A stretch of 34,584 nt of DNA, taken from the NCBI RefSeq assembly GCF_001194135.2, contig NC_068985.1, forward strand, positions 15,556,803-15,591,386, read 5' to 3'. Position numbers and translations under genes: made by a program. Source of the stretch: Octopus bimaculoides. Taxonomy: Eukaryota. The notes under the pieces are model-generated. The model had not been told where the DNA came from. It was given only the letters and a program-made list of their open reading frames with translations, and searched no databases. Below, piece by piece: positions 14,301-33,110 of this stretch (position 1 is its first letter; every line of letters begins with the position of its first letter).

Positions 14301-17300
14301 GGATTACACTAAAAAAACAATATTCGGGGTGGAGATCGTGGACTTAGAAAAAGAGATAGACTTAAGTAAGCTATCACCAAAGATGGCCTTTCATCACCTT
14401 GAACTCAATAGCTATTTGTAACGAATTAATGTTGTAAAAAAAGTGTGTCAAAAGAGTTAAACGAGGCCACTCGGATGTGAGGTCGAGTGGTCTTCATTCC
14501 ATTTTTTTTATCATTCATATCCATCTTTTCCACTCGTTTTTTCTTTTTTCCCCCACTTATATGTTTGTCTGTCCTTGTATCGTCCCTCTTTGTAGGCCCA
14601 TGTGGGCATTAAAGAACAATCTTTTGCCTCAGGCCAGAGACCATATGCAATTACCGTCGTTCTAATGACGTTTGCCTGGAAGTCTTCTAGACTACCGTCG
14701 TTCTAATGACGCTTGCCTAGCAGATTTCAGACCACTATCATTTTCACGACGTAGATTCAACAGCTATCATTATATCCTGCGTTATCATGGCGATTTGTTC
14801 AGCAGCTAATTCTATCACCACAGGCTATTCGACATTGGCTTGTCATGTTACCAATTTTGTTGACACCTGCTATGAACTTGTAACAGTAAGTCTAAGCTAT
14901 GAACTGAATATGTTTCCCGTTTAAACCCCACACACGGTACGCACACACGTTTCTGATACCCTTTCAATTTTGTCTCATGACTAGCTAGCGTTTACTTGTT
15001 ATTCAAAAAGGATCCATACGTTAATATTTGATTTCTTACATTGTATGAAAAGCTGTTTGTATCATCTATCCCAAATAAATTCTATTTAATATTGAATGGA
15101 GTCTAATCTTCCTTTTATGACAGAATACTATTATACAACTTAAATTTAGTGGAATGCTAGATGGCCATCCCTACACTACTGAGTTTGGTGTAATGTCATG
15201 GTAGTACCCCGCTAAAGCACTATATTGTGGTGCATGTGTATAAGTGGGTGTAGACATGCAGGTTTGTGTATGAACGTTGAGGGAAAAAAAAAATTCTGTT
15301 TTGTTTTACAAACAAAATACTGTGCAGTGCATAATTAGGTCAGCCTGCGAAGTAAGAAAGAAGATGCAGACATTCAAAAAGAAAACATGTAGCGAGAAAA
15401 AAAACAACAAAACAATGTAGTTGAAAGAATTGTACATGTGTGCAAAAATGTGCAATGCCAGTGGCCAAAGAGGAAAAAAAAGTATACAATTAGACTTTCA
15501 AAAACAAATGAAGGTGTGCAGTGCTAACAAAAGAGAACGAAATAAGCAAGCATTTGAAATACAAAAATATGTGTATGCGCACAAAGTCTAAGTACAGCAG
15601 GACTGGTTTGAAAAATCTGTGACTGTGGAGAACGTTGCATGTACGGGCTTTTCATTTTGGCAGTTTTTGGTCGGATGGCTGCAGAAATGTTACGTTTATT
15701 GATCGGAGATGTTTTCTTTGTGGATCTGTGCAACATAGTGGAGTGCATTCTCTGGCAGGTTGAAAGTGCATGGCGGGTTCTTTTCCTTTTTGCTGTGTGA
15801 CAGTCGAATGGAAACTGTGTGTAGTGAAAGTTGTTATTCTTGTCTTTAATGTGATGCTCATGATGTGAAGGCTGTAATTCTTGAGCTCGGGTTTCCAGAA
15901 TGTAGCGACGAAAGGGAAAATTTAACAGTAGAACAAAAAATTGTTTTTATCTTCCAAATGCAATGAAGTTGGTGAAGTAGAAGCAAATGTGTATTAGAAC
16001 GTCGGGAAGCATATTAGGCAACGGCTGTTGGAGCGAAGGCTGTAGATCTTTAAGCTCGGGGTCACCACTTGTAGTGGGCGTTTGGTGAAGGCCGCATTTG
16101 TTTTCACGGAATCGTGCGATGCAGCGAACTGATGTGCGATGTGACGGATATAGAACATGTAGAATCACATCGGGGTCACCAATTATAGCGGCTGAAGTGA
16201 GATGCCTTGTCATATCACATCAATATGATGTGGCTTAGTGCTTCTCAAGCTATCTGATATGGCGTACCGGCAGTTTTTTTTCCAATGTACCAGAGACAGG
16301 TAATATTTCTTAGCAATATTAATTTATACCGGAAACAATATATATCTACTACATATGTGGAAAATCGGTGTGTATTTGTTTGTGGCGTTGTTAGCTAACT
16401 CCTACATTGTTTTATTGATTTTGATGAAACTTGACACGTGAGTAGAACTCATGTCTGGAAACCTCGTGACATACTTAGATTGTTGAAAAAAATCGATAAC
16501 ACGGCCCCAGGAAGGGACCTTTATATCTACCTCATATAACTAATTTTTTAAATACCCAAGGGAAATAACGCATAGCACCTGCACAATATTTTAAAACACA
16601 GATCCACGAAGAAAACAGATTTTGGCACAAGGCCAGAAATTTTGGGGGAGGGAAAGTCGATTACGTCGACTCAACGCACAACTAGTACATATTTTATTGT
16701 TCCCTGCAAGGATGAAAGCAAAGTCGATCTCGGTGGAATTTGAATCGTCTGCTAGTTGGAGTTCAGCATACATTCATGCATGTGCATACAAAATGGACAA
16801 GTTAATCAGCTTTGGGAAGATTGGTGTCGGGTAAGTGTGGAATGGGGATGTTAAAAATTTGAAACTGCGAAAAAGTTCTTTCAGAATCGCAATCTCTGTA
16901 TTTTAAAAAGTGTAATTTGCTCTAAAAAAAAAAAAGAGAGAAGAAAAAAATGGTAAAAGTTTTAAAACCCTGGAGCAGCAGGTGGGCAAATCTTTTGGGA
17001 ATTAGAAAGCAGCAATATTTCGGTATTAGTATATGACGTAAGTCATGAATGAATGTGTGTGTGAGTGTATTTGTTATTGACTGTTCAGCTCTGTCAAGCA
17101 GATGAAACAAAATGTCACACACTCACTCATGACGCCATAGATTTTTACTGAAAGATTGTCTGGAAAGCTTTTTGTTGTAGAATCATAATCTCTGATATTG
17201 AAAACGAGGGGATCCGGAGTAATTTGTGAGAGAAGAATTAAAAAGTATATAAAAAGAAGATGAATCAGGAGTGGGGCGACTCTATGATATTTCTGCGTGC

Positions 17301-18071
17301 GTCTATCCATCTATTACACCCATGGACGTTTCTCGTGAGCGAATATGACTGAGTAGCATGCTTTCGCTAATTGTTTTAGTGAGCCTATATAATCACGAGC
17401 AGATATTGACAGCATCTCGACCCTCCCATCTTTTGATCCAAAGGAACGAGAAGGATGAGACAACCGGAAAGAGACAGGGTGCAGGGTCGCACCAGTTGTC
17501 GTCTGGTCTGACACTCATTTTCAGTTGAGAGGACTGGGGCAATGTGAAAAAAGGCGTCTCGATGAAAGACACAACGCACCGCCTGGTCCAAGCAGCGCTG
17601 GATTAATCATTAAGCAAAATAAGCAGAAAAGTGCTTAGGGTATCACGGGAAATGGGGGGCGGACACCACAGAAACGGTAAATGGTTTACAGCATAAAAGA
17701 TGTCATTTTAAACTTGCAAAAATAATATTCGAAATGGTTTATATGATCAGAAATATAATTTCGAAGTATTCATGGATTTAGGATGTATTCTGTTGGAATT
17801 GTAGTTTATCTTTTCTTTGTTTTCTTGCTATTCTTTCCATGCACACACAGTTTATGTATGGCAATAAAAATATTAATTTAGCACATAAACGATGGTTATT
17901 TAAGTTATTACATACTTTTACATTGCAATAAGAAGAGTAAAAGTATTTATAAAAGTTACCTTTCGCATTTGGTGTAATAAAAGGCCATGTATTTATGACT
18001 ATAGGTAAATTTGAACTCGCAGATCTAGCGACGAAAATTAGAAGGAATAATAAACACACCCTCTGTGACAT
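1506..18071 (-). CDS. AGA: Aspartylglucosaminidase (N4-(beta-N-acetylglucosaminyl)-L-asparaginase), whole gene, 8 coding exons, 1053 nt = 350 aa
   Basis: complement(join(17960-18071, 11444-11603, 9351-9463, 8797-8909, 7441-7643, 4707-4814, 2096-2229, 1506-1615)). All introns are GT-AG with consistent phases. Signal peptide, then [38 protein letters not shown]|TIG autocleavage site (Thr207), RVGDSP, ATGNGD. Confidence 0.96.
1740..2050. repeat. Degenerate (GT)/(GTAT) low-complexity microsatellite in AGA intron 7
   Basis: Direct reading; source of spurious H/T- and V/Y/C-rich ORFs. Confidence 0.85.
2096..2229 (-). CDS. AGA: AGA exon 7 ([44 protein letters not shown])
   Basis: TTTCAG| acceptor, G|GTGGGT donor, 134 nt, within ORF 2082-2276. 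Confidence 0.92.
2340..2514 (+). mobile_element. tRNA-derived SINE family A, 5' half
   Basis: GGCTGTGTGGTAAG...GTTCAGTACCACTG...TTGGGCAAGTG...GAAAGAAGCCC then (TA)n, matching the head of the copies at 21869 and 30141. Confidence 0.8.
2515..4260 (+). mobile_element. Non-autonomous Helitron/Helentron-like element with an internal ~278-bp tandem duplication
   Basis: 5' ACTAGC...ACCTGGCTTTGC. 3' CCAAATTTCAT..ATCGGTGCAGTAGTTTT...ACACACAAACACAC-TTATATAATAGAT. These termini are typical of Lep1/DINE-like elements (family assignment is inference). Confidence 0.55.
4420..4560 (-). mobile_element. SINE family A 3' part, diverged
   Basis: Reverse complement resembles CTTGACAAC..TTACGTCC..AACTTA..ATAAGTAC..GGGGTCGAT of the full copies. 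Confidence 0.5.
4707..4814 (-). CDS. AGA: AGA exon 6 ([35 protein letters not shown])
   Basis: TTTTCAG| acceptor, AG|GTCAGT donor, 108 nt, substrate-binding RVGDSP and ATG motifs. Confidence 0.96.
5116..5318 (+). mobile_element. (GAT)n-tailed retroposon family C, 3' end
   Basis: GCACCCACTACACTCTC..GTTAGGAAGGGCATCCAGC..CCCATGCTAGCATGGAAAGCGGACGTTAAA followed by (TGA)16. Near-identical to 9835-9991. Confidence 0.8.
7040..7300 (+). mobile_element. Family C retroposon copy, diverged
   Basis: GGAAGGGCAT..CCAACCCATGCCAG..GATGTTAAATAATGATGACGATGATG. Confidence 0.6.
7441..7643 (-). CDS. AGA: AGA exon 5 ([13 protein letters not shown]...[31 protein letters not shown]), contains the catalytic Thr
   Basis: TTCAACAG| acceptor, GG|GTTTGT donor, 203 nt, Thr codon at 7521-7523. 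Confidence 0.95.
7690..7874. mobile_element. Possible hAT/Charlie-like MITE
   Basis: Degenerate TIRs ATGTTTTCCAATCTGGGG ... AAAGGTTAGGAAACAATG. Confidence 0.35.
8035..8375 (+). mobile_element. Composite: SINE family D head (8035-8172) joined to a family C tail ending in (GAT)n
   Basis: GGCGAGCTGGCAGAA..GTTCTGAGTTCAAATTC..GACTTTGCCTTTCATCC-like head, then GTTAGGAAGGG..CCCATGCCAGCATGGAAA..(GAT)n. Confidence 0.65.
8797..8909 (-). CDS. AGA: AGA exon 4 ([10 protein letters not shown]...[12 protein letters not shown])
   Basis: TTGCAG| acceptor, AAA|GTAAGT donor, 113 nt, NCQPNFW motif. Confidence 0.95.
9351..9463 (-). CDS. AGA: AGA exon 3 ([37 protein letters not shown])
   Basis: TTTTGTAG| acceptor, G|GTAAAG donor, 113 nt, hand-translated. 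Confidence 0.95.
9610..9991 (+). mobile_element. Family C retroposon with four internal ~65-bp GGCACGT-AAAA repeat units
   Basis: Units start at 9618, 9684, 9748, 9815, followed by the family C tail and (GAT)n. Confidence 0.75.
10230..10305. mobile_element. Right end of a hAT-like MITE with an 18-bp perfect palindrome
   Basis: AGGGTTCATATGAACCCT (10274-10291) followed by GGTCGAGAACCACTG, the reverse complement of a CAGTGGTTCTC-type TIR. Confidence 0.5.
10770..10920 (-). mobile_element. SINE family D copy
   Basis: TTTTGGCACAAGGCCAG...CCCCAGTG..TGGTACTTAT...GAATTTGAA, same as 16620-16750. Confidence 0.6.
11444..11603 (-). CDS. AGA: AGA exon 2 ([20 protein letters not shown]...[10 protein letters not shown])
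   Basis: TTTAAAG| acceptor, GG|GTAAC donor, 160 nt, conserved Ntn-hydrolase alpha-chain motifs. Confidence 0.95.
11829..12829. mobile_element. Probable non-autonomous DNA-transposon remnant spanning an assembly gap
   Basis: Inverted GCCAATCAGAA(11941)/TTCTGATTGGC(12626) motifs, AATAACTCT and ACCAAATTTGAAAACAATCGG blocks. Its 5' GATGGAATTTTTGACGCTGAATC recurs, inverted, near 34490-34510. Confidence 0.35.
12315..12388. other. Assembly gap (74 N)
   Basis: Run of n. Confidence 0.99.
13021..14619 (+). mobile_element. ORF1-only non-LTR retrotransposon derivative (L1/Tx1-like, HAL1-like), 1.6 kb, with a 16-bp TSD
   Basis: Flanked by perfect TCTTTTGCCTCAGGCC at 13005-13020 and 14620-14635. 5' hairpin, disrupted ORF1, 3' hairpin, ATTAAA and a short A-rich end. 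Confidence 0.75.
13086..14209 (+). pseudogene. Disrupted LINE ORF1p/gag-like ORF with a degenerate zinc knuckle
   Basis: Three track ORFs join across in-frame TGA (13437) and TAG (13494) and one frameshift near 13780. [14 protein letters not shown] (13805-13846) is CX2CX4HX4C with the first C changed to Y. Basic/Pro-rich C-terminus. Confidence 0.65.
14652..14733 (+). repeat. Tandem ~41-bp duplication, each unit with a CGTCGTT-CT-AATGACG hairpin
   Basis: TACCGTCGTTCTAATGACG at 14652 and 14693. Confidence 0.85.
16341..16520. mobile_element. DINE/Helentron-like terminal block
   Basis: ATATCTACTACATA..GTGTGTATTTGTTTG..AACTCC..GATTTTGATGAAACTTGAC, the reverse of the 4190-4260-type terminus. Confidence 0.4.
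16620..16750 (-). mobile_element. SINE family D copy
   Basis: TTTTGGCACAAGGCCAG..GTCGAT..GGATGAAAGCAAAGTCGATCTCGGTGGAATTTGAA. Confidence 0.6.
17495..17592 (-). mobile_element. Old SINE family B core fragment
   Basis: Reverse complement GCGTTGTGTCTTT..TTTTCACATTGCCCCAGTCCTCTCAACTGAAAATGAGT matches the core of 23593-23925. Confidence 0.5.
17960..18071 (-). CDS. AGA: AGA exon 1 ([37 protein letters not shown])
   Basis: ATG at 18071, hydrophobic signal peptide, [10 protein letters not shown] motif, donor G|GTAAC at 17959 (phase 1). Confidence 0.93.
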
Positions 18072-18509
18072 GATTCAAGAAGAAATGAAATTTAAGTATA
18101 GGCTTAGAGTTATCTCCCCTTAGACAGAAGGTCAGCCATGTAGCGAGCTTCTAGGAAGGGTAATTCGAAACCACTTATTTCAACTTTAAACTCGTAATTC
18201 ATTTTGTTCCATTGTTTATTCAGTGTTATTTTAATATGTAATTGATTTGTTTTGTAAATGGGTTTCTTGTCTTCTCCAGAAACTCTTAGTTGTTGTTGAA
18301 ACAATACTCTAAAGATATTGAAAAACATATTTTTCACTCAAAATGCTTTGAGCGAATAGAGTAAGTTTGTTCGATCATGTAATGCCGTTGCTACAGTAAG
18401 AGACTTGAAAGCGAAACATAATTGATTTGATGGATTTATGAGGTTAAAATACATGAAGTGTGGAAGCAAATAGAACGTTTTCAATTAGCAAACTCATGAA
18501 ACTTCAACT

Positions 18510-18550
<41 letters not shown>

Positions 18551-20407
18551 CTGTGGTAACCTTCATATATTGACCGCAACATTTGTGAATAGCGAGTAGG
18601 TTTCGGTAATTATTTACAGTGACGGCTTTTGATTGAAATTAAAACACTGTATAAAATATGTGTGTTTATATAAAGTGTGTAAATTGTGTGAAACTCGATG
18701 TACTTTGAGTCGATAGCGCTGAGCGTTTATGTCTTATGTAATACAATTTAAATGGTTGTAAATTTATTTATTATATATGCATTACATTGAATTTCAAATT
18801 TGTTTAGTAGGGAATATATATGATTCCATACTGAATTTTAAGTTTAGTATGGTATTTTATTACGTGCATACGTTTGTTTATTCCTCATTATGACGAATGT
18901 GCGGAATCTGAAATCCGAATTAAGGCTTCCTAGCAAAGGTACTTCCCATCTTTGTTCTTGTCACGATGCTCGAATATAAAATTGTCAACCGGCGCTGTAT
19001 TTCCCATTATTAGTTACGCGCTAAGCTTCCTACTTTTGTACAGGAGGGAGCCTCAATGACATATAGTTTATTTATCATCATCATCGTTTTTATATCCTTC
19101 TTTTCTCTGCTTGCATGTTTTGGGTGAATCTTGAAGAACATCGTTCTTTTTGCCACATGGACTGGACACATTTTATCGCAGCTCTGACACTAGAGAGATT
19201 GTCTGGGATATGAGACATTTTGGCGTTGCTTATTCGACGCTGACTTATTTGAAACCAAACGTTTTAATATTTCTCACGTTTTAATGGTTCTGTCTCTTTC
19301 CTCTTCTCTCTGTTTATGTGTGTGAGGGTATTTCTCGATGTGTAAGAGGAGAAGGAAATTGTTTATGTTGATTGTGTTCGTTTAATAAATTGTAATGTCT
19401 CTCACCCTCACTCTATCTATATGTGTTTATTTCTGTTCGTGCAAACATGTGTGTATTCGTGGATTTACTTCCAACACCAGTGCTGTCACCAAAACAGGCT
19501 GAATATCCAGTCAGCCATACCAAATTGTCAGCATCATTCCATAGATGTAGATTTCCCTCTACCCTTTTTGGGGAATTCTATATTTTATCTGGAGTTAGTG
19601 CCTTCATAGGTGAGATTTTTTTTGTGATACTACGTGTAGAGTCCCTACATCCATCAGTCTTCATCATCATTTAATGTCCATCTTCCATGCATGCATGGGT
19701 AGGACAGTTGACAGGAGCTGGTGAGGTTGAAAAACTACCCTAGGCTACTGTGTCTGTTTTGGCAGGGTTTTTACGGCTGGATGCCCTTCCTAACACCTCC
19801 CACTCGGCAAAGTGGACTCAGTGCTCTTTATGTGGCACTAGCATAGGTGAGATTAGTTTTGGCATGATTTTAACAGCTGGAGACCCTTCCAAATGCCAAC
19901 CACTTTACAGTGTGGACTGGATGCTTTTTACATGGCACCAGCACTGGCAGGGTCACTAAGTAACTCACAAGAATGGAATTATGAGAGGAGCAGGGGTATT
20001 TGAAGAGAGGGACTTTTGTCAGAGAATGAAAGGTTAGAGTGTGATAAAAAGGCAGAAACAGAAACAAGTGTCTTGCTATAATGGAGGGGACATTGGAAGA
20101 CGTGATCCGATATCAAATGATGAAAGGTAATGTGTATCATATGTGATGTATGGATGCTGAGGAAATATGATATGTGTATCATATATGATACATAGTAAAG
20201 GCAGAGGGTTAAGAAGGACATCAAATGTATTACTCTCACCAATCCTAGAAGACTAAGAAATCCTTGGTGACAAGCCTCTTCCTCCAGACATAGATAATAT
20301 AAATCCTCTAAATACATTGATGGAAAATTAAGATTAAAGGTTAGAAAGAGCATTGCTAGTTGATAATTGTTTAATAAAATAATTTAGAAAGTTTTCTTTC
20401 TTTTCAG
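18072..20407. promoter_or_regulatory. Divergent (bidirectional) promoter region between AGA and the uORF-MKKS transcript
   Basis: Head-to-head orientation. Both transcription starts must lie in this interval. Candidate + strand donors: AGA|GTAAGT (18361), CTG|GTAAAT (18511), AAG|GTACTT (18939). TSS not identifiable. Confidence 0.55.
19660..19960 (-). mobile_element. Family C retroposon copy
   Basis: CATCATCATTTAATGTCCATCTTCCATGC...GGATGCCCTTCCTAACACC, the reverse complement of the family C tail. Confidence 0.65.
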
Positions 20408-20413
20408 CTAACA

Positions 20414-20593
20414 ATGTTGAAGCAATTGAAAGCCTTTGCCAAGAATTACACAGTGCTGCTTGTTATGATCCCTTCAGTAGTTGCCTTACATGTTGGTTGG
20501 TATTATATGCAATTCAATCCTGATTTAGTTGAGCCTGAAAAACAAGAGATTCGGATTTTGGGGAAAATATTTAAGAAAACCCCAAAAGAATAA
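20414..20593 (+). CDS. MKKS upstream ORF 1 microprotein, uMKKS1-like, 59 aa: MLKQLKAFAKNYTVLLVMIPSVVALHVGWYYMQFNPDLVEPEKQEIRILGKIFKKTPKE
   Basis: Lies in exon 20408-20617 (TTTTCTTTTCAG| acceptor, AAA|GTAAGT donor). A at -3. Basic N-terminus plus one hydrophobic segment. YTVLLVMIPSVVALHVGWY resembles human uMKKS1 YKVLVVMVPLVGLIHLGWY (recalled). Confidence 0.85.
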   Translation: MLKQLKAFAKNYTVLLVMIPSVVALHVGWYYMQFNPDLVEPEKQEIRILGKIFKKTPKE

Positions 20594-20749
20594 ATTAGAA
20601 ACTCCAAATTACTCAAAGTAAGTTAATGTTTTTAATAAATATTGGAAAAAAGAAAAACCCATTCCTTAAAATTTTTTTTTGTTTATTTTGTTTTCTGGCT
20701 GATATCAAGTGAGGGCTAAATTATTATACTAGGTGTAACTCTTGTAAGC

Positions 20750-20915
20750 AAAGGCACGTGGCCTAGTGGTTAGGGTGCTGTACTCATGATTATGAGATTT
20801 TGGTTTCAATTTCTGGACTGGGTGGTGTGGTGTGTGGTGTTCTTGAGTAAGACACATTATTTTATATAGCTCTGCAGTCACTTCAACATCTGATGTTTGG
20901 CACACTGTGCCAGGC
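20750..20915 (+). mobile_element. SINE family B copy, diverged
   Basis: GGCACGTGGCCTAGTGGTTAGG..GTTTCAATTTC..GTGTTCTTGAGTAAGACAC. Confidence 0.6.
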
Positions 20916-21149
20916 AATCTTGATTTGATGGAACGACTGAGCTAATATGCAACATGAACATTGAAGCACTACAAGCAAATCATCTCTGTGATGGTTGTTC
21001 AGCAAGCTGTTGCGGAACCCTCATCTATCTTTTATGACTGGATAATCCACAAACTATTGTAATCAAACTAACATCATTTTAAGGGTATTTTAAGGATTTA
21101 TAAATTATTTCTACTATTTCAACTTTACTACTTTCTAACCACAAAATAA

Positions 21150-21610
21150 TTAATCGGTCACTTTGGAACAGCAATGAAATGAGCCATTCTAGTAATGTCT
21201 TACATTAAAGTCTTAGCTGTTAATTTGTAATTTTATTCATGGAATTATTTCTCAGTGTAAACATTGAAGTAAGGTAGGATGCCTCGCTACACTGGACATT
21301 AGTGGAACAGCCTAAGCTGCTTGTAGATTTCCTCAGACACCCATTTTAGAAAGTGTTGATCATATTTCCTTATACTACAAGCATCCTGTGCCATACTTTA
21401 TGACATATTTGACATTGCAGTTATAGACCCCAATATTGCCCCTAAAACTGTATTGCCTAAATTTCAAGATCAACTGATATGAATTCATAGCGAACTTTGG
21501 CAAGCTTGGCATGGACGTCTGTTTCCACCCCATTGACGTAGTTGATAAGGATTCCTAGGTATCGAAGGTTCTCCATATCATCTTGTGCAGTCATGGACAA
21601 ACTGCAGGCC
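21150..21610 (-). mobile_element. Degraded RTE-clade LINE reverse-transcriptase C-terminal fragment
   Basis: With frameshifts, the minus strand reads ENLRYLGILI..DVHAKLAKVR..RQYSFRGNIGVYNCNVKYVIKYG..F*NGCLRK, matching the RTE post-RT pattern (YLG..ARIAKAR..YNSNVKSVLLYG..FHNxCLR). Confidence 0.6.
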
Positions 21611-21868
21611 ATGGATCTTTCAATAAAAAAAAATTACCTCGAATTTTATAGTAGTCTCCCCTGATGATAAATCCTGTCTCATGTAGCCCGCTTGTTGCAA
21701 AAGGTTGCCCATGACTGGTCTAGTGGGCTATTTATGTGCATGATTGGTGTTTTTGATGAAGAACCTGTTTGCTTTACATACTTGTTCAGCTTACGAATTC
21801 TCTTAAGTCAATGATTTCTTTTTGAAGAGAGGGTTGCCAAATCAGGAAGAGAATGGGAAAGAATATAC

Positions 21869-22034
21869 AGAAGTGGCTGTGTGGTAAGTAGCTTGCTTAC
21901 GAACCACATGGTTCCGGGTTCATTCCCACTGCGTGGCATCTTGGGCAAGTGTCTTCTACTATAGCCTCGGGCCAACCAAAGCCTTGTGAGTGGATTTGGT
22001 AGACGGAAACTGAAAGAAGCCCACCGTATATATG

Positions 22035-22067
<33 letters not shown>

Positions 22068-22278
22068 ATGTTTTTGTCCCCCAACATCGCTTGATAACCG
22101 ATGCTGGTGTGTTTACGTCCCTGTAACTTAGTGGTTCGGCAAAGCAGACCGATAGAATAAGTACTAGGCTTCCAAAGAATAAGTCCTGGGGTCGATTTTC
22201 TCGACTAATGGCAGTGCTCCAGCATGGCCGTAGTCAAATGACTGAAACAAGTAAAAGAGTAAAAAGAGTAAAAGAGTA
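21869..22278 (+). mobile_element. Full-length SINE family A (tRNA-like head, central (TA)n(TG)n, GTAAAAGA tail x3)
   Basis: Near-identical to 30141-30650. Confidence 0.85.
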
Positions 22279-22409
22279 TCTCACACTGGATTTCACTGAA
22301 AACTATTCAGAGAGTTTCTTCTCATTGATCAAATTGTATTAAGAAATCTTAAACACCACTGATATTAAATTTCTATTTTTTTTAAATACAATTCTAGGAT
22401 TTGCCAAAC

Positions 22410-22574
22410 ATGTCTCTAAGAACAATTTTCCAATCAGCTGCTAATTGGGCCCATAGCAACAAGTTTGTTTCCTTGATAGTCATCACATCTGCTGTGTACT
22501 TAGCAACATATCCACTGAAAACACCAACAGTCGCTACTTCTGAAGAGAGAATTGCTAAATCATCCCCAAAATAA
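22410..22574 (+). CDS. MKKS upstream ORF 2 microprotein, uMKKS2-like, 54 aa: MSLRTIFQSAANWAHSNKFVSLIVITSAVYLATYPLKTPTVATSEERIAKSSPK
   Basis: Lies in exon 22398-22577 (TTCTAG| acceptor, CAG|GTTAGT donor). A at -3. One hydrophobic segment. W-x3-N...V-x-L-x-TY pattern resembles human uMKKS2 WIRKN...VHLGTY (recalled). Confidence 0.75.
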   Translation: MSLRTIFQSAANWAHSNKFVSLIVITSAVYLATYPLKTPTVATSEERIAKSSPK

Positions 22575-23439
22575 CAGGTTAGTTACAAATTTCAAAAATA
22601 TTTTAATTGCTTTAATCTTGTATTCAGGGACTGATCTTCAAAAACTATTCTTTATAGATTAGCAAAAGAAAATTGTTTATTTTATTTTTTGTTCCTCTTG
22701 GCTTTTAAAATATGTATGTGGAAATGAACATGTAATTCTCCTTTGTAGTATGAAATATGGATTCAGAGAATTGTGTGGCTATCATAGAAAGCTCTTCTAA
22801 CAAACTCGGCTAACAGATCACATAGTAATGCAGAATAAATATCCATGTAGCTGGATGCCCTCCTCAATGCCAACCACTTTACAGAGAGTACTGAGTGCTT
22901 TTATGTGGCACTGGCACTAAGTATGATTACTAAGTACCTTGCAAGACATGACCCCTCGACTGAGAGGGGACTAGTTTTGAGGATGTAATTTTATTCCAGA
23001 GGATGCGAGGTTGAAGTATGATGGAGGAGGTAGGTGTGTGTCAGGGAGGTAATAAGTGGCAGCAGAGACAACTCCTAATATACAAATTAGGAGAAGCCAA
23101 CATAGGAACCTTTATGCAGTCACTCAGACTAGAAAACAACAGGGAATCTCCTTCAAATCACAATCTACTGTATTAAATAAAACATTTTAGGTAATGTAGT
23201 GATCACATCCATGAATATCTCTACTCATGGCTCTACTCAATCAGGATTGACCGGTAGCAATACAAGAACAGTAGCAGATATAGCTAAAATTATTGCAAAG
23301 TATATTTTGCTCGTGAGATTGTCTGTCTCACAATATTTATAGAGAGATTTTCTTAAATTAAAATTATCAATTATATGAAGAAAAAATCTGTTCTTTAAAG
23401 ATTTTTCTATATAGTTAATCATTTTTAATTGAAGAAAAT

Positions 23440-23590
<151 letters not shown>

Positions 23591-23592
23591 AA

Positions 23593-23925
23593 GGCGCATG
23601 GCTCAGTGGTTAGAGTGTTGAGCTTACGATTGTGAGGTTGTGAGTTCGAATCCCGGACCGGGCTGCGTGTTGTGTTCTTGAGCAAGACACTTTATTTCAC
23701 GTTGCTCCAGTTCACTCAGCTGTAGAAATGAGTTGCGATGTCACTGGTGCCAAGCTGTATCGGCCCCTTTGCCTTTCCCTTGGATAACGCTGGTGGCGTG
23801 GAGAGGGGAGGCTGGTATGCATGGGCGACTGTTGGTCTGCCATAAAAAACCTTGCCCGGACTTGTGCTTGGGATGGTAACTTTCTAGGTGCAATCCCATG
23901 GTCAGTTATGACCGTATGGTGTCTC
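23593..23925 (+). mobile_element. tRNA-derived SINE family B, well preserved
   Basis: Pol III A box TGGCTCAGTGG (23599-23609) and B box GTTCGAATCC (23644-23653), then core TTGTGTTCTTGAGCAAGACAC..CAGCTGTAGAAATGAGT. Confidence 0.8.
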
Positions 23926-24159
23926 AGCATATATATGTACATACACACACACATACACATACATACATACATACTTACCCCTCTGTCTCTATGTATATAT
24001 CTGTTTGTGTGTGTGTGTGTATATACATACAAGCACGCATGTGTATATATACGCAAGCATGTGTATATATACACAAGCACACATATTTACCTGTCTGTCT
24101 GTCTGTCTATATATATATATATATATATCTGTATATATTTCAGAGTTTATAATTGAATA

Positions 24160-25150
24160 ATGCAGGAAGTTACTGAAACTAAAATCCTACGTGGCAAACT
24201 CACAGACAAGGAGACAGTGCACCAACTCAATTCCCTTAGGCATTTATTTTCCACCACAGTTGGCCCTTATGGAGGTATTAAGCTACTGCGTAATAACTGC
24301 GGTGGTCATATCACACTGACAAGTTCATCATCCAGGCTGCTGGCTGCTCTGCGACCTACAAATCCTTTAGCTCGACTCATAATTGAAGCCTGTTCAAAGC
24401 ATTCACATACCTATGGAGATGGAGCTCTCTTTATGGCTCACTTTATCCTAATTCTGATAGACAAAGCTTTGAAACTTGATTTAGATCATAGGTTGATTAC
24501 CAAAGTAAATTCATTTCTTCTTGAATTATTTCTTAGTTATTTAAAATCAGATGATTTCTCCTGTAAAATGGCTGTAGAAATATCTGATGTTAATTCTTTG
24601 TGTCAGGTGGCCAGTACGATGTTGTCATCGAAACCATTGTACCAGCTAGACGAACAGCTACTGAAGTTGATGAGTTCTGTACTCTTAGAGACTTTCATTA
24701 GAAGCCTTCCTTCTGAAAGACTGGACAGTTCCTTAAGACCCGTCTTAGACAATATACACATCATTGGTATTCCTGGTGAAGAAACACATAATTCTTTCTG
24801 TTGTGAAGGATTATTGCTTGAGGCTACAAACATCAAAGAAGTGCTGTCATGGCAAACACAGAGAGAATCTCTGGAGAATATTTGTACAGTTGTAATAAAT
24901 GTATCTATGGCAGGAGATTCTATTGAGCTACCTCAGTTGACTTATGCCCGTACCAGTCTTAAAGAACTTGAGCAAAGTTTTCTTACTCATATGGAGTCAT
25001 TCTGTTCTGAACTCATACCAAAAGGCATTAGAATTTTATTCTGCCAGAAAGTGGTTCACCCTTGTCTAAAAGACCAACTGAGAAGAAACGGTGTATTGGT
25101 TCTTGATCGTCTTGGTGCTTTGCTGTGCTCCAAAGTTATCAATTTAACAG
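24160..25150 (+). CDS. MKKS: MKKS coding exon 1 (exon starts 24144 with 16 nt of leader)
   Basis: ORF 24160-25158. TTTCAG| acceptor at 24143, in-frame TGA two codons upstream of the ATG, donor ACAG|GTAATT. Confidence 0.93.
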
Positions 25151-28100
25151 GTAATTAGTTAATTATTTTAAACTGACATTATGTTGTATTAAATTATCTG
25201 TTTAACCCTTTAGTGTTTAAACCAGCCACATCTGGCCCAAATATTCTACATGTTTTATATTTGAACTAGCCATATCTAATCTCTCACACCTAACCTACAT
25301 TGACATTCTAAAAATAAATATTCACATCATTGAGTTTTCAAAGCTATGAGATAATGTATGATTAATTCAAAACAATTTGAGTGAAAAGGCATTACATTTA
25401 ACAGAGTAATTTGAACATTAAAGGGTTAATATGTCCTTATAGAAAATGAACAAGTGCCAATGTTAGCTTTGGCCAAGTTTCTACAGTTGGATGCCCTTTC
25501 TGATGCCAATCACTAGATGCTTTTTTCATGTCACCATCCCTAGTGAGGTCTCTAAAAGAACAGGAAAATAATAAAAACTCCTTTGATTATGTGTGTGTGT
25601 GTGTGTGTTTGGCAGGGAGTATTTGAGAGAGTGGGGAGGTGGTTTTATGCTGGATGTTGAGAGGTTGAAGTGTGATAGTCTTGCTATAGAAGAGATAAAT
25701 GGCTATGCCACATATAATGGTGGATGGGAGTAACTGGAAAGAAGGTAGAGATGCTGGTGACTAGATACCAGATCATCTCAAAATACAAGGTGAGTGTAAG
25801 AGAGGATAGAGGCAGTGAATTGGGGTGGGAAGGTAATAGTTAGAAATAGGGGTAGAAATGAATGTAATGAATGAATGAGAATGGATATGCAATTGATGGG
25901 AGATAGCAGGATAGAGAGAGCATAGGGTTAGAGAGATAGAAGTGGTTCAAGAAGGAGAATGTATCAGAAAGTAGGGTGGTAGGGATGTGATGTGCATGAG
26001 GTTGTAGCGGTGGGGAGGGAGATGGTAGAAATAAATAAGAGGGATGGGCAATGATAGGTGATGCATGATGGGCGATATGGTAATGTGTTGAGAATGATAG
26101 TAGATATGAGAGATGTTAAGACAGAGTATGGCAGAGAGAGTGCAATGACTGAAGGTACAGAAAATTGAGCAGTGAAAATAGTGTGGGGAAAGGATGATAA
26201 TGTGAATGAGAGATGGAAGGGGTTCCAAGAGGGAAGGGAGGTAATTGGAAGTACAAAGAAAAAGTTAGATGTAAAATGTGTTGGTTTTGCTCTCAAGTGA
26301 TTGCTGCAGCAGAGTAGTGCCATAGACAGAGGAGTGATGTTTGCTAGAGAATGAAATGTGGGGAATGCTTGACAGAGTGGAAAGGGTGGAAAGGCAGCGC
26401 TCTAATCAAGTTTGACCTGGGGCTAAACATCTACAGCTGGATGCCCTTGCTGATGCCAATCACTAGATGCTTTTTTTCATGTCACCATCCCTAGTGAGAT
26501 CTCTAAGTAACTTGAAAGATAAGAAAAGAACAAAAAAATAATAAAAACTCCCTAGATTATGCATGTGTGTGCGGGTGAGTATTTGTGAGAGTGGGGAGGT
26601 GGGGGGCTAAACAACAACACTGCTAGTAGTGATTTAATCTTGATAGTCTCTACTGTTTAAAATATATTTTCAGGTTCCGTTCCAATTAGTTCATTTTCAT
26701 CAGCTTGCTCTCCAGATCAGTTAGGGAGAATCAGTAAATTCTCTGTCATGGATGTTTTCGGAAAGCAGTGGCTTCATCTGAATCAGATTTCCAGCAGTTT
26801 AGTTACCCTTGTAGTTTGTAGTCAAATGGAAGAACAGCTTGAAGAATTAAAGGTTGGTTTGTCTCCTTTCTACAAGTGTTAGAATTGCAAGGAATTCTTT
26901 CCTTTATTTATTTATATTTTAATTTCATCATTCGCTTGAATATATAGTGTTTGCGAGTGGAGAAAGCTTTCATCAACAGCTAGTTATTGTCTCATACTGA
27001 GGATGGGTAACCATTTCAGAAACCATGATCTGTGAGTATTATGTAAGGTTGGAGATGGGAGCGATGACCTCCCTTGCAAACACTATACGGACACAGACTG
27101 TGTGTTCATAACCAGCAGGAAAAGATGTTTTCCTGGGGGCTTAAACAGCAGTAATATCATCCTTTATAGGACTGCCACATTCTGTTGGTGAATAAACTTT
27201 ACTATATATATGTATATATATATATAGTTGGTATTATGCAAAAATATCGTAAGAATGTTGCTTTTTCAGAAAACGAAAACATAGTCTCACCATTCCATAG
27301 CAAAACCATTGTACTACACTTTGACAATTTTTGATATCTTGGCATCTGAAGTAGCTGGAGATGTGATAGTTCGACCCAAAGAACCAGCTATTCCAAGTAA
27401 AAATAAATATTGATAAAAATGCATTTGGCCAAATTTTGACATATGACAAATTCTCTCCTATTCATTCTGCCATGTAGCAACATTAAATGATGATGGTATA
27501 AAGCTTTTAGAATGCCAAATGTAAAAAGAATGGTAGTAGAATGTGAATATTTGGGTAAAAAAAAAATATTTAGAGAAGTGTTGTTTATAATTCATTAATT
27601 TTTTAAAATAAAATTTATTAGAATTCTATTTTCTTTTATGAAATATTATTAAAAAAAAAAGATTAGAAGGAAAAATAGTGCATGGTAGCAAAATACTTCA
27701 GTTTTTATAGAGCCACATCTTTAAGATACAAGTATATTTATGAGATCAAAATATTTTATAGGTGTGGGTCTAGCTGTGTGGTTAAGAAAGGTGTTTCCCA
27801 ATCATATGGTTGGGTTCAGTCCCACTGCATGGCATCTTGGGCATGTCTTCTTATACAGCCCTGGGCTGACCAAAACCTCATCTGTCAATTTGGTAGATGG
27901 AAACTGAAAGAAGCCCATTGTACATGTGTTGTGTGTGTGTGTTTACCCATGTCATGACATGTCATGATTGTAAATCAACCTTCTAAGAAACACATGTCAG
28001 GTCTTGGGGAAACAGGTGAAGGTTGGCTGTAGGAAACCTGCCTCAACAAATTCTCTCCTATTCATTCTGCCATGTAAAAGTAGACATTAAAACAATGAGG

Positions 28101-28689
28101 ATGAATGTATTCATTTCTCTAAATTCCATCAGTTATGCAACAGAAGTGACACTCAGTGATAATCCTTCTAAAGTAGTAGGATAAGTTGGTATTTGTAAGC
28201 CTGTGGAATGTCTTTGAGTGGATTTTAAGTTGAGAGAGGGATTTATGTAGTTCATGTTTAATTCCAGTGTTTTTTTTTTTTTATATATATTTTGTTCAAT
28301 TTTACAGGTGAATTGCAACAATGTGATGTTAGCATTCCAGCACCTTCTCAGGACACCGGCTGTACTGTATGGTGGAGGCTGCTGGCAGTTCACTTTGGCT
28401 AACGAGCTTAGAGTTGAGGTAAGACTATTTTTTCTTTATTGGTTACTTGGAATATTTTCTTATTTGTTCTATCCTTTACTCATCTCTTCAGTATTTAGTC
28501 TTTCTCCTTGCTTCTCCAACTCATCTTCTCTTGAAATATTTATTATACGTTTCCTTGCTTCCCAACTACATGGATTCAGGGTCAGCCCCACTGCATGGCA
28601 TGTTGGGCAAATGTCTCCTGTTATAGCATCTAGCTGACCAAAAGCTTTATGAGTGAATGGATTTGGTTGGTGGAAATTGAAAGAAGCCT

Positions 28690-28734
<45 letters not shown>

Positions 28735-29537
28735 TCATGATCACCATCATTTAACATCTGTTGTCCATGCTGGTATGGCTTGGACTGTTTTACCAGTCAT
28801 TCTTCTTCAGATTCTGAGTTCAAATTCTGCCAAGGTCAACTTTGCCTTTCATCCTTTCAGGGTTGATAAAATAAGTACCAGTGGAAAGCTGATATAATTG
28901 ACTTTCCCTCCCCTAAAATTAATGGACTTGTGCCTAAATTTGAAACCATTATTATTATTATTAACCCATGCTAGCATGGAAAGCGGACGTTAAACGACGA
29001 TGATTATTATAATTATTATTATTATTATTATTATTATTATTTATTTTTTTTTTTTGTCTATTTCAGGTTTCTGAAAATTTAGAAAGCTTCTCCAGTAAAC
29101 TGGATTGTTCCGAATCCCAGTTATTGCAGCTGTGTGATCATCTATGCACAAGTTTGGAACAAGCTGTTTCCCCATCTTCTCAGCAGAGTAAAAAATGTTT
29201 CACCCATCCTTCAGCTGGTCATCTTTGGATACAGGACGACCATGAAGTTAATGTAGAAAAAACTTGTTCATGTGGTTTGCTTTGTTGTAGTTTGTCAGAT
29301 TTGAAACTTCAACCTTTAGAACATTCTCCTTCATTTGACAGATTTTCTAAGAAAGAGCTTCATGGCTCTTACAACCCTCTTGATACAATATCCAGTTCTG
29401 AACCTCCAAAGAAACCTCTTCTAATGGACTGCTTTATTCCATGGAAAACAGCTGTAGAAATATCAGTACTTCTAGCCAATATGGCTCTTAGTACCAATCA
29501 GTTTATCTTTGACACCAACTGTAAACCATCAACATAA
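24160..29537 (+). CDS. MKKS: McKusick-Kaufman/Bardet-Biedl syndrome 6 chaperonin-like protein, 4 coding exons, 1752 nt = 583 aa
   Basis: join(24160-25150, 26674-26852, 28308-28418, 29067-29537), GT-AG, phases 1/0/0. Motifs VGPYGGIK, CQKVVHPCLK, LDRLG, GGGCW, GHLW, LLMDC. Large first coding exon followed by three smaller ones, as in vertebrate MKKS. Confidence 0.93.
25206..25425. mobile_element. piggyBac-type MITE (220 bp) with TTAA target duplication
   Basis: TTAA(25202-25205)|CCCTTTAGTGTTTAAA ... TTTGAACATTAAAGGG|TTAA(25426-25429); TIRs 14/16. Confidence 0.8.
25480..26602 (+). repeat. Local ~165-170-bp direct duplication (25480-25642 / 26430-26602)
   Basis: Shared TGATGCCAATCACTAGATGCTTTTTT..CATGTCACCATCCCTAGTGAG..AATAATAAAAACTCC..GAGAGTGGGGAGGTGG. 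Confidence 0.85.
26674..26852 (+). CDS. MKKS: MKKS coding exon 2 (GSVPISSF...QMEEQLEELK)
   Basis: TTTTCAG| acceptor, AAG|GTTGGT donor, 179 nt, open in the required phase. Confidence 0.9.
27760..27940 (+). mobile_element. SINE family A, 5' half
   Basis: GCTGTGTGGTTAAG..GGTTCAGTCCCACTGC..GAAAGAAGCCCATTG. Confidence 0.7.
28308..28418 (+). CDS. MKKS: MKKS coding exon 3 (VNCNNVMLAFQHLLRTPAVLYGGGCWQFTLANELRVE)
   Basis: TTTACAG| acceptor, GAG|GTAAGA donor, 111 nt, chaperonin GGG motif. Confidence 0.92.
28550..28732 (+). mobile_element. SINE family A, 5' half, ending in (TG)n
   Basis: CTTGCTTCCCAACTACATGG..CCCACTGC..GAAAGAAGCC then (GT)n. Confidence 0.7.
28805..28950 (+). mobile_element. SINE family D fragment
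   Basis: TTCTGAGTTCAAATTCTGCCAAGGTCAACTTTGCCTTTCATCCTTTC..AAGTACCAG..CTTGTGCC. Confidence 0.6.
29067..29537 (+). CDS. MKKS: MKKS terminal coding exon (VSENLESF...FIFDTNCKPST*)
   Basis: Poly-T + TTTCAG| acceptor, continuous with ORF 29124-29537, TAA at 29535-29537. Confidence 0.92.
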   Translation, partial: VSENLESFSSKLDCSESQLLQLCDHLCTSLEQAVSPSSQQSKKCFTHPSAGHLWIQDDHEVNVEKTCSCGLLCCSLSDLKLQPLEHSPSFDRFSKKELHGSYNPLDTISSSEPPKKPLLMDCFIPWKTAVEISVLLANMALSTNQFIFDTNCKPST

Positions 29538-29978: not shown

Positions 29979-30428
29979 TGCACTGGTGCGATTGTGGTAA
30001 GAAGCTTGCTTCCCAACCACATGGTTTCAGGTTCAGTCTTACTGCATGACATTTTGGGCCTGTATCTTCAACTCTAGTCCAAGGTGAGCCAAGGCCTTGT
30101 GCGTAGATTTGGTAGTTGGAAACTGAAAGAAGTCCATTTTGCAGGAGTGGCTGTGTGGTAAGTAGCTTGCTTACCAACCACATGGTTCCGGGTTCAGTCC
30201 CACTGTGTAGCACCTTGGGCAAGTACCTTCTACTATAGCCTCGGGCTGACCAAAACCTTGTGAGTTGGTTTGGTAGACGGAAACTGAAAGAAGCCTGTCG
30301 TATATATGTATANNNNNNNNNNNNNNNNNNNNNNNNNNNNNNNNNNNNNNNNNNNNNNNNNNNNNNNNNNNNNNNNNNNNNNNNNNNNNNNNNNNNNNNN
30401 NNNNNNNNNNNNNNNNNNNNNNNNNNNN

Positions 30429-30462
<34 letters not shown>

Positions 30463-30650
30463 TTGTCCCCCCAACATCGCTTGACAACCGATGCTGGTGT
30501 GCTTACGTCCCCGTAACTTAGCGGTTCAGCAAAAGATCCGATAGAATAAGTACTAGACTTACAAAGAATAAGTCCTGGGGTCGATTTGCTCGACTAAAGG
30601 CGGTGCTCCAGCATGGCCGCAGTCAAATGACTGAAACAAGTAAAAGAGTA
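29979..30650 (+). mobile_element. Two head-to-tail SINE family A copies: truncated 29979-30138, full 30141-30650 with a gap inside its microsatellite
   Basis: Repeated head sequence; tail GACTGAAACAAGTAAAAGAGTA. Confidence 0.85.
30313..30428. other. Assembly gap (116 N) in (TA)n
   Basis: Run of n. Confidence 0.99.
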
Positions 30651-32056: not shown

Positions 32057-32113
<57 letters not shown>

Positions 32114-33110
32114 NNNNNNNNNNNNNNNNNNNNNNNNNNNNNNNNNNNNNNNNNNNNNNNNNNNNNNNNNNNNNNNNNNNNNNNNNNNNNNNNNNNNNNN
32201 NNNNNNNNNNNNNNNNNNNNNNNNNNNNNNNNNNNNNNNNNNNNNNNNNNNNNNNNNNNNNNNNNNNNNNNNNNNNNNNNNNNNNNNNNNNNNNNNNNNN
32301 NNNNNNNNNNNNNNNNNNNNNNNNNNNNNNNNNNNNNNNNNNNNNNNNNNNNNNNNNNNNNNNNNNNNNNNNNNNNNNNNNNNNNNNNNNNNNNNNNNNN
32401 NNNNNNNNNNNNNNNNNNNNNNNNNNNNNNNNNNNNNNNNNNNNNNNNNNNNNNNNNNNNNNNNNNNNNNNNNNNNNNNNNNNNNNNNNNNNNNNNNNNN
32501 NNNNNNNNNNNNNNNNNNNNNNNNNNNNNNNNNNNNNNNNNNNNNNNNNNNNNNNNNNNNNNNNNNNNNNNNNNNNNNNNNNNNNNNNNNNNNNNNNNNN
32601 NNNNNNNNNNNNNNNNNNNNNNNNNNNNNNNNNNNNNNNNNNNNNNNNNNNNNNNNNNNNNNNNNNNNNNNNNNNNNNNNNNNNNNNNNNNNNNNNNNNN
32701 NNNNNNNNNNNNNNNNNNNNNNNNNNNNNNNNNNNNNNNNNNNNNNNNNNNNNNNNNNNNNNNNNNNNNNNNNNNNNNNNNNNNNNNNNNNNNNNNNNNN
32801 NNNNNNNNNNNNNNNNNNNNNNNNNNNNNNNNNNNNNNNNNNNNNNNNNNNNNNNNNNNNNNNNNNNNNNNNNNNNNNNNNNNNNNNNNNNNNNNNNNNN
32901 NNNNNNNNNNNNNNNNNNNNNNNNNNNNNNNNNNNNNNNNNNNNNNNNNNNNNNNNNNNNNNNNNNNNNNNNNNNNNNNNNNNNNNNNNNNNNNNNNNNN
33001 NNNNNNNNNNNNNNNNNNNNNNNNNNNNNNNNNNNNNNNNNNNNNNNNNNNNNNNNNNNNNNNNNNNNNNNNNNNNNNNNNNNNNNNNNNNNNNNNNNNN
33101 NNNNNNNNNN
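32114..33110. other. Assembly gap (997 N) preceded by (TA)n
   Basis: Run of n. Confidence 0.99.

Follow-up and report, generated by a model that had tools for sequence, protein, structure and literature searches.

A probable second cistron encoding a single-pass microprotein in the 5' leader of the Octopus bimaculoides MKKS gene

A stretch of 34,584 nucleotides (nt) of the Octopus bimaculoides genome (contig NC_068985.1, positions 15,556,803 to 15,591,386 of the forward strand; hereafter the window) was analyzed, which contains the MKKS gene and, ahead of its main open reading frame (ORF), two small upstream ORFs, uORF1 and uORF2. The window is 85-93% identical to Octopus vulgaris chromosome OX597818.1. 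The element under study, uORF2, starts with an ATG at 22410, ends with a TAA at 22572-22574, and encodes 54 amino acids (aa), MSLRTIFQSAANWAHSNKFVSLIVITSAVYLATYPLKTPTVATSEERIAKSSPK. The original prediction, made from the octopus letters without database searches, held that this ORF nearly fills a 180-nt exon, leaving 12 nt ahead of its ATG and 3 nt beyond its stop codon, and that its product resembles human uMKKS2. We found the exon layout to be exactly as described: the acceptor (...aattctAG/gatttgccaaac, AG at 22396-22397) lies 12 nt ahead of the ATG, and the donor (cag/GTtagt, GT at 22578-22579) lies 3 nt past the stop codon. The parts of the transcript are listed below, with splice junctions marked by a slash.

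18098..18159, plus strand: putative non-coding first exon of the MKKS transcript, 5' end undefined; donor AGG/GTAATT, GT at 18160
20408..20617, plus strand: exon 2, with uORF1 (20414-20593, 59 aa); acceptor AG at 20406-20407, donor GT at 20618
22398..22577, plus strand: exon 3, the uORF2 exon, 180 nt; AG/gatttgccaaacATG … TAAcag/GTtagt
22410..22574, plus strand: uORF2, probable 54-aa single-pass microprotein cistron, between uORF1 and the MKKS start
24144..25155 (3' end approximate), plus strand: exon 4, with the MKKS start codon (ATG at 24160) 16 nt past its acceptor (AG at 24142-24143)
approx. 26664-26855, 28317-28427 and 29097-29537, plus strand: later MKKS coding exons, placed by tblastn of the MKKS protein of contig L005 against the window

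The first exon aligns with exon 1 of P0001, a gene model of O. vulgaris, where the donor is kept as well; since it lacks an ATG and carries stop codons in the window, it fits a 5' untranslated region. The starts of uORF1, uORF2, and MKKS each lie 6-16 nt past the acceptor of their own exon, and all three AUGs are preceded by an A at -3. After splicing, the spacers are 36 nt between uORF1 and uORF2 and 19 nt between uORF2 and MKKS. The main ORF encodes a group II chaperonin-like protein: it matches the Cpn60_TCP1 domain (Pfam E=2.1e-34), and over residues 3-332 it runs colinear with sheep MKKS, in that gene's first coding exon (tblastn E=8.6e-30). Exon 4 is 97% identical to an O. vulgaris gene encoding a 583-aa Cpn60_TCP1 protein. 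The assignment of the main ORF to MKKS was made from these matches.

An exhaustive HMMER (phmmer) search with uORF2 against 1.84 billion representative proteins was carried out, which returned nine matches at E<=1e-3 (E=1.6e-8 to 7.5e-4). Eight of the nine were retrieved; every one contained the motif W-x3-N-K-F-x-S-[LF]-x8-Y-x-A-T-x-P-x3-P-x-V-x-T-S-x-E-R, and seven were of 50-86 aa. Further members, including one from the gastropod Nucella lapillus, were found by profile search. Residues W13, N17, K18, S21, P35, P39, and E46 were invariant in an alignment of 15 sequences, and distant members shared 43-57% identity. Pairwise identity at the first, second, and third codon positions was 0.58, 0.66, and 0.34, respectively (47 ungapped codons, eight divergent species). 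That the third positions are the most variable, as is typical of protein-coding DNA, indicates that the uORF2 peptide is under selection.

We found that the homologues of uORF2 directly follow homologues of uORF1 wherever the flanking sequence suffices, and that an MKKS-like ORF comes next in four of the five such species. The spliced, cDNA-like contigs L005-L007 and L013 carry uORF1, uORF2, and an MKKS-like ORF of 576-591 aa in this order, with spacers (uORF1-uORF2/uORF2-MKKS) of 56/25 nt and 64/36 nt, and mapping by tblastn located all three ORFs on the O. vulgaris genomic sequence (L001). On two gastropod-like genomic contigs, L010 and L018, uORF1 and uORF2 occupy one exon each. A separate exon holds the MKKS start in L010, where 4 nt separate the uORF2 stop codon from the donor, and L018 ends ahead of any MKKS exon. 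Contig L007 retains an intron that ends 7 nt before the uORF1 ATG, and L008 and L009 are broken at a point 3 nt upstream of the MKKS ATG; both positions match exon junctions of octopus. Because both uORF exons are untranslated-region cassettes, exon skipping, by which the original prediction would have the set of cistrons chosen, is possible; both uORFs were present in all assembled cDNA contigs of the L005 species.

In three species the end of uORF2 resembles a splice donor, with a GT site spanning the final sense codon and the stop codon: L018:10067-10072 (AA/GTAAGA), L015:~537-542 (AC/GTGACT), and L016:~10153-10158 (AA/GTAAAA). A sheep acceptor lies 4 nt before the MKKS ATG (cag/TAACATG), and splicing of the donor-like sites to that point, as a candidate event read from the sequence, would set a new stop codon 1 nt from the AUG.

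The uORF1-uORF2 pair was also found in a compact, intron-poor animal genome (L002; also L003 and L004), where uORF1 and uORF2 lie 15 nt apart at 9800-10198 and are followed by an AATAAA and an OATP gene in convergent orientation. The 10 kb fetched on either side of the L002 pair contained no MKKS-like ORF, indicating that uORF1-uORF2 can persist without an adjacent main ORF. Judged from its sequence, this locus appears to be a stand-alone dicistronic microprotein gene. The pair bears on the view that uORF2 is purely regulatory, its translation alone throttling MKKS and its peptide having no function. The spacers to the next AUG are short, as that view would have it, and the human MKKS uORFs are described as repressing the main ORF in passages of PMC11837024, which summarizes Akimoto 2013, and of PMC7530721. 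Against it stand the amino-acid conservation across distant taxa with its seven invariant residues, the bias of divergence to third positions, and the retention of the pair in L002, where the 10 kb fetched downstream contain no MKKS. We regard a purely regulatory uORF2 as highly improbable.

Within the genus, the exon of O. vulgaris keeps both splice sites and an intact ORF, the latter as the original prediction required of other octopods; the two ORFs differ at 10 sites, of which 5 are synonymous and 5 nonsynonymous. In P0001, annotated as a 79-aa hypothetical protein, the donor of the uORF1 exon is spliced to exactly the acceptor that corresponds to 22398, and the end of the model (…RFAKHVSKNSFPVGC) is the uORF2 exon, from its acceptor onward, in another frame. 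This model (L001:10001-15441) assembles exon 1, a portion of uORF1, and the uORF2 exon out of frame, and a public model of Nucella lapillus, P0014 (125 aa), fuses uORF1 and uORF2 in one protein. Public gene models mis-handle the locus in O. vulgaris and probably in Nucella.

Several observations weigh against uORF2 as a coding unit of octopus. The dN/dS between the two Octopus species is 0.30, a value from only 5+5 changes, and frame +1 gives 0.28; with only 10 changes and such similar values, the within-genus comparison is weak evidence. The uORF2 exon is 93-95% identical to O. vulgaris and the first ~120-130 nt of the next intron (22578-22705) are 97-98% identical; this conserved intron start may be a splicing or other regulatory element. 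A word-indexed search of a collection of 5.8 billion proteins did not find uORF2 (the same search with uORF1 returned one mis-framed O. vulgaris model only), and neither uORF2 nor uMKKS2 matched anything in Pfam, NCBIfam, or the PDB sequences. Most family members come from Logan or metagenome contigs, so that the taxonomic breadth is established only in part. The cDNA-like contigs are from species other than octopus. Candidate peptides for detection of uORF2 are TIFQSAANWAHSNK and TPTVATSEER.

Two further features of the octopus sequence were considered and rejected. An AATAAA at 22834 was a candidate for a conserved, mammal-like polyadenylation signal after uORF2, but it reads AATGAA in O. 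vulgaris. Depletion of AUGs within uORF2 was suggested by their absence, by eye, from the copy in the window; O. vulgaris and L005 have internal ATGs, so the depletion is not conserved.

From the flanking intron, which is as well conserved as the exon between the two Octopus species, one could hold that uORF2 is a chance intronic ORF, with fortuitous splice-like signals around an unused exon. ORFs of its size are common in the AT-rich window (73 ORFs of at least 40 aa overlap the 10.2 kb from 14000 to 24200), and hence the ORF alone proves nothing; by a composition estimate, 54 stop-free codons arise by chance at ~0.02 per frame. What exceeds chance is the protein-level conservation across species together with the conserved position, and not the length of the ORF. 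Homologues with E-values down to 1.6e-8 among 1.84 billion proteins, their matching placement on spliced cDNA contigs from elsewhere in the family, and the same exon layout in L010 and L018 all speak against an accident, which we consider very improbable indeed.

Taken together, these results make it highly probable that uORF2 is a genuine protein-coding cistron, the second of three on the octopus MKKS mRNA, and that it encodes a single-pass membrane microprotein of a conserved invertebrate family. The ORF, its exon signals, its family, its position, and its coding constraint were read directly from the sequences, as were the profile comparisons given below; its transcription and translation in octopus are what we infer from them. 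The core of the original prediction, a conserved single-pass microprotein ORF in an exon of its own within the MKKS 5' leader, in the slot of mammalian uMKKS2, is thereby upheld.

The structure of the uORF2 peptide was predicted by AlphaFold2 with the family alignment, which gave a mean predicted local distance difference test (pLDDT) score of 76 and helices at residues 3-16, 18-33, and 44-50. The helix at 18-33 is hydrophobic (pLDDT ~80-88) and is followed by a Pro-rich linker. The best 17-residue hydrophobic stretch, residues 20-36, has a mean Kyte-Doolittle (KD) value of 1.73 (1.71 for human uMKKS2), with a net charge of +2 on each flank. Prediction of the annotated Nucella fusion of uORF1 and uORF2, run without an alignment, had a mean pLDDT of 40 and was uninformative on pairing of the helices. 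Human uMKKS peptides are translated in vivo and found in mitochondrial membrane fractions (PMC7066179, PMC11837024), and both human MKKS uORF peptides localize to mitochondria (PMC7066179). By analogy with them, and because its helix is moderately hydrophobic and flanked by basic residues, the uORF2 peptide is most likely inserted in a mitochondrial membrane; it counts against this placement that it is drawn from vertebrate peptides of doubtful orthology to uORF2. Because the two are always co-encoded, uORF2 may act together with the uORF1 peptide.

We compared the two octopus uORFs with the human peptides, whose sequences were taken from PMC7066179 Supplementary Data 1. The human uMKKS2 string quoted in the original prediction is the one given there (MKNTSWIRKNWLLVAGISFIGVHLGTYFLQRSAKQSVKFQSQSKQKSIEE). 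Octopus uORF1 matched human uMKKS1 with a BLASTP E of 2e-10 (36% identity over 42 aa), and invertebrate and vertebrate uORF1 profiles matched by hhalign with P=3.6e-13 and probability 97.9%; octopus uORF1 is thus a clear orthologue of uMKKS1. For octopus uORF2 and human uMKKS2, BLASTP gave E=0.012 over 10 residues. The profile-profile comparison proposed with the original prediction, here of 15 invertebrate uORF2 with 26 amniote uMKKS2 sequences, gave P=0.0064 and probability 5.9% by hhalign, in the register that the prediction had drawn, and homology in the form claimed is unsupported. In column permutations, the score of this comparison was reached by none of 997 under a global null and by 15 of 992 (~1.5%) when the hydrophobic block was kept; permutation scores near 130 were end-gap artefacts (9 columns, 0% identity) and were left out. 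The gapless register W13=W6, N17=N10, T33=T26, Y34=Y27 was the best of 65 offsets (18.7 vs 12.0 for the next).

The amniote uMKKS2 sequences were closer to the uORF1 family. Invertebrate uORF1 matched amniote uMKKS2 by hhalign with P=2.1e-5 and probability 77%, and none of 1000 block permutations reached the score; with the uMKKS2 family (SWIRKNWLLVAG…GVHLGTY) as the common partner, P was thus 0.0064 for uORF2 and 2.1e-5 for uORF1. Human uMKKS2 matched a gastropod-like uORF1 with a BLASTP E of 8e-6 and the window's own uORF1 with 1e-4, and vertebrate uMKKS1 matched uMKKS2 with an hhalign P of 1.4e-3. In its motif, …R-[KR]-N-x-[LV]-L-V … S-x-I-G-x-H-x-G-x-Y-x-x-Q, amniote uMKKS2 is of the uORF1 type. 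Between invertebrate uORF2 and uORF1, hhalign detected no similarity (P=0.12-0.17). In a blind test with a hidden Markov model (HMM) of amniote uMKKS2 against 1105 ORF segments of the window, uORF1 came first and uORF2 was not among the best 6 listed; conversely, the HMM of invertebrate uORF2 did not find uMKKS2 in the sheep locus. Since uMKKS2 is closer to the uORF1 family, it looks, by its sequence, like a paralogue of uMKKS1, with octopus uORF2 as its positional counterpart.

The sheep locus was examined on L016, where the two uORFs lie at 6398-6589 and 10001-10162. Sheep uMKKS1 is in its own exon, and uMKKS2 starts 42 nt past the next acceptor and lies 224 nt before the MKKS ATG. An intron between the small ORFs is thus common to lineages from molluscs to mammals, and the conserved slot and intron argue by position for a link between uORF2 and uMKKS2.

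Two histories were weighed on this evidence. In the first, uORF2 is the strict orthologue of uMKKS2: the bilaterian ancestor had uORF1-uORF2-MKKS, uORF2 had arisen from an early duplication of uORF1, and the invertebrate copy lost all recognizable likeness to uORF1 while that of vertebrates did not. The shared slot, the intron between the uORFs in sheep and molluscs, and the similar size and topology are as expected from it, and so are the best-ranked gapless register, the hhalign P of 0.0064 with its 15 of 992 block permutations, the T-Y that both uORF2 types have in place of the W-Y of uORF1, and the distance of 13 residues from the N to the aromatic residue in both. It has to contend with the much closer similarity of amniote uMKKS2 to uORF1 in every comparison made above (P=2.1e-5 vs 6.4e-3; BLASTP 8e-6 and 1e-4 vs 0.012; 0 of 1000 permutations), the absence of similarity between invertebrate uORF2 and uORF1, the transitive register (-4), which is not among the top offsets, the failure of both reciprocal blind HMM searches to pick the partner ORF, and the C-terminal P-x3-P-x-V-x-T-S-x-ER, which is absent in amniotes. 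We give strict orthology somewhat less than an even chance.

In the second history, the two occupy the same slot and are not orthologous: uMKKS2 arose as a vertebrate tandem duplicate of uMKKS1, the invertebrate family with NKF and TSxER (NKF/TSxER) either was invented separately or goes back to an ancestral partner that vertebrates lost, and the weak resemblance reflects general features of short membrane helices. The strong similarity of uMKKS2 to uORF1, with none between uORF1 and invertebrate uORF2, favors this course, as does the choice of uORF1 in the blind HMM test; and since the invertebrate family evolves slowly (43-57% identity), a sudden loss of all likeness to uORF1 would be unexpected. 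Its cost is that either two independent gains of a ~50-aa membrane ORF at one place or a replacement is needed, and that only 1.5% of the scores under a composition-preserving null are as high as that of uORF2 with uMKKS2, which comes from a single clean register without gaps. We judge the case for non-orthologous occupants to be evenly balanced. Of the label that the original prediction gave uORF2, uMKKS2-like, the part that concerns position, size, and topology therefore stands, and the part that concerns sequence homology is marginal; octopus uORF2 belongs, by sequence, in a separate family whose orthology to uMKKS2 is unproven.

A broader proposal, which we offer tentatively and as a minority view among our own expectations, is that uORF1-uORF2 is an ancient dicistronic microprotein gene and the primary conserved product of the locus, predating or separable from MKKS. 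The two peptides would form a joint small membrane module, probably mitochondrial, and the NKF/TSxER partner would have been replaced in vertebrates by a duplicate of uORF1. The proposal draws on the pair in L002, with no MKKS in the 10 kb fetched, and on the leader-only transcripts made at the human locus. If the proposal is true, invertebrate uORF2 represents an undescribed, widely conserved animal microprotein family without a vertebrate orthologue.

With uORF2 taken as a coding cistron of the MKKS mRNA, ribosomes would translate uORF1 and uORF2 first, and only reinitiation or leaky scanning would bring them to the MKKS AUG. The output of the locus would be largely the two membrane microproteins, with little MKKS, in agreement with reports on human, and the uORF2 peptide would, by analogy, insert in a mitochondrial membrane, possibly together with the uORF1 peptide. 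A 2026 study reports that the human locus yields mainly the 63-aa peptide rather than MKKS, and that normal respiration depends on this peptide (PMC13577902).

The neighborhood of the gene contains the following feature on the other strand.

17778..18071, minus strand: an ORF that probably forms the first coding exon of the divergent neighbor, a gene of the Asparaginase_2 kind (aspartylglucosaminidase-like, AGA); the orthologous O. vulgaris gene is an Asparaginase_2

A Pfam search with this short exon alone gave no match. The MKKS and AGA genes are arranged head-to-head, with <100 nt between the AGA ATG and MKKS exon 1. An Asparaginase_2 neighbor in divergent orientation was also present on contigs of the L005/L008 species, and its occurrence there and in octopus suggests a conserved bidirectional promoter. 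Dispersed repeats resembling short interspersed elements (SINE-like), with microsatellite tails (D2, D3, D5), lie at 21868-22270, 2341-2511, 27844-27929, 29981-30312, and 30538-30650; one copy stops ~130 nt upstream of the uORF2 exon, which is itself unique sequence. The segment 12888-14209 is GC-rich (0.48) and contains overlapping plus-strand ORFs of 97-183 aa, one of which has a CCHC-like string. It is a possible retroelement Gag remnant, and Pfam searches with its ORFs gave no match at E<=0.01. Runs of N (assembly gaps) with TA/CA microsatellite flanks occur at ~30000-30300 and ~32100-33100.

Published accounts place the conservation of MKKS uORF peptides within mammals or extend it as far as lobe-finned fish (PMC11837024; bioRxiv 10.1101/2024.11.14.623419). 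In the literature searched, such peptides were reported in vertebrates only, with no report of invertebrate homologues, of an NKF/TSxER family, or of paralogy between uMKKS1 and uMKKS2. A three-cistron MKKS mRNA in molluscs, with conserved intron positions, would take this architecture back to early bilaterians. The second cistron of invertebrates constitutes a distinct, well-conserved family, and the human uMKKS1/uMKKS2 pair is probably to be read as paralogues. Invertebrate models and a natural genome with the pair and without MKKS offer a route to roles of the microproteins that are independent of MKKS.

The closest known counterpart of uORF2 is human uMKKS2 (50 aa, UniProt V9GZ13; NCBI 'LOC128706666 homolog' in other amniotes), which likewise is the second leader ORF, after uMKKS1 and before the MKKS AUG. 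Both peptides are of ~50 aa and have a single helix of moderate hydrophobicity between basic residues, both are separated by an intron from uORF1, and in the gapless register they share W, N, V, L, T, Y, and L. Unlike uORF2, human uMKKS2 lacks N-K-F-x-S and P-x3-P-x-V-x-T-S-x-ER and has the uORF1-type motif. Sheep uMKKS2 is followed by AATAAA signals and has no obligatory intron to MKKS, whereas octopus uORF2 occupies a separate exon that lies 1.57 kb from the one after it. Human uMKKS1/micro-MKKS63 (63 aa, Q9HB66) is the orthologue of octopus uORF1 and not a homologue of uORF2; like uORF1, it shares the leader with a second membrane microprotein and, in sheep, has its own exon with the ATG soon past the acceptor. 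More distant parallels are MIEF1-MP and SLC35A4-MP (named in PMC7530721 and PMC11837024), each a conserved mitochondrial leader peptide ahead of an unrelated main ORF, with a dual role as protein and translational brake. They are single uORFs with no sequence relationship to the MKKS peptides, whereas the MKKS leader carries two cistrons, a pair that can exist alone, as in L002.

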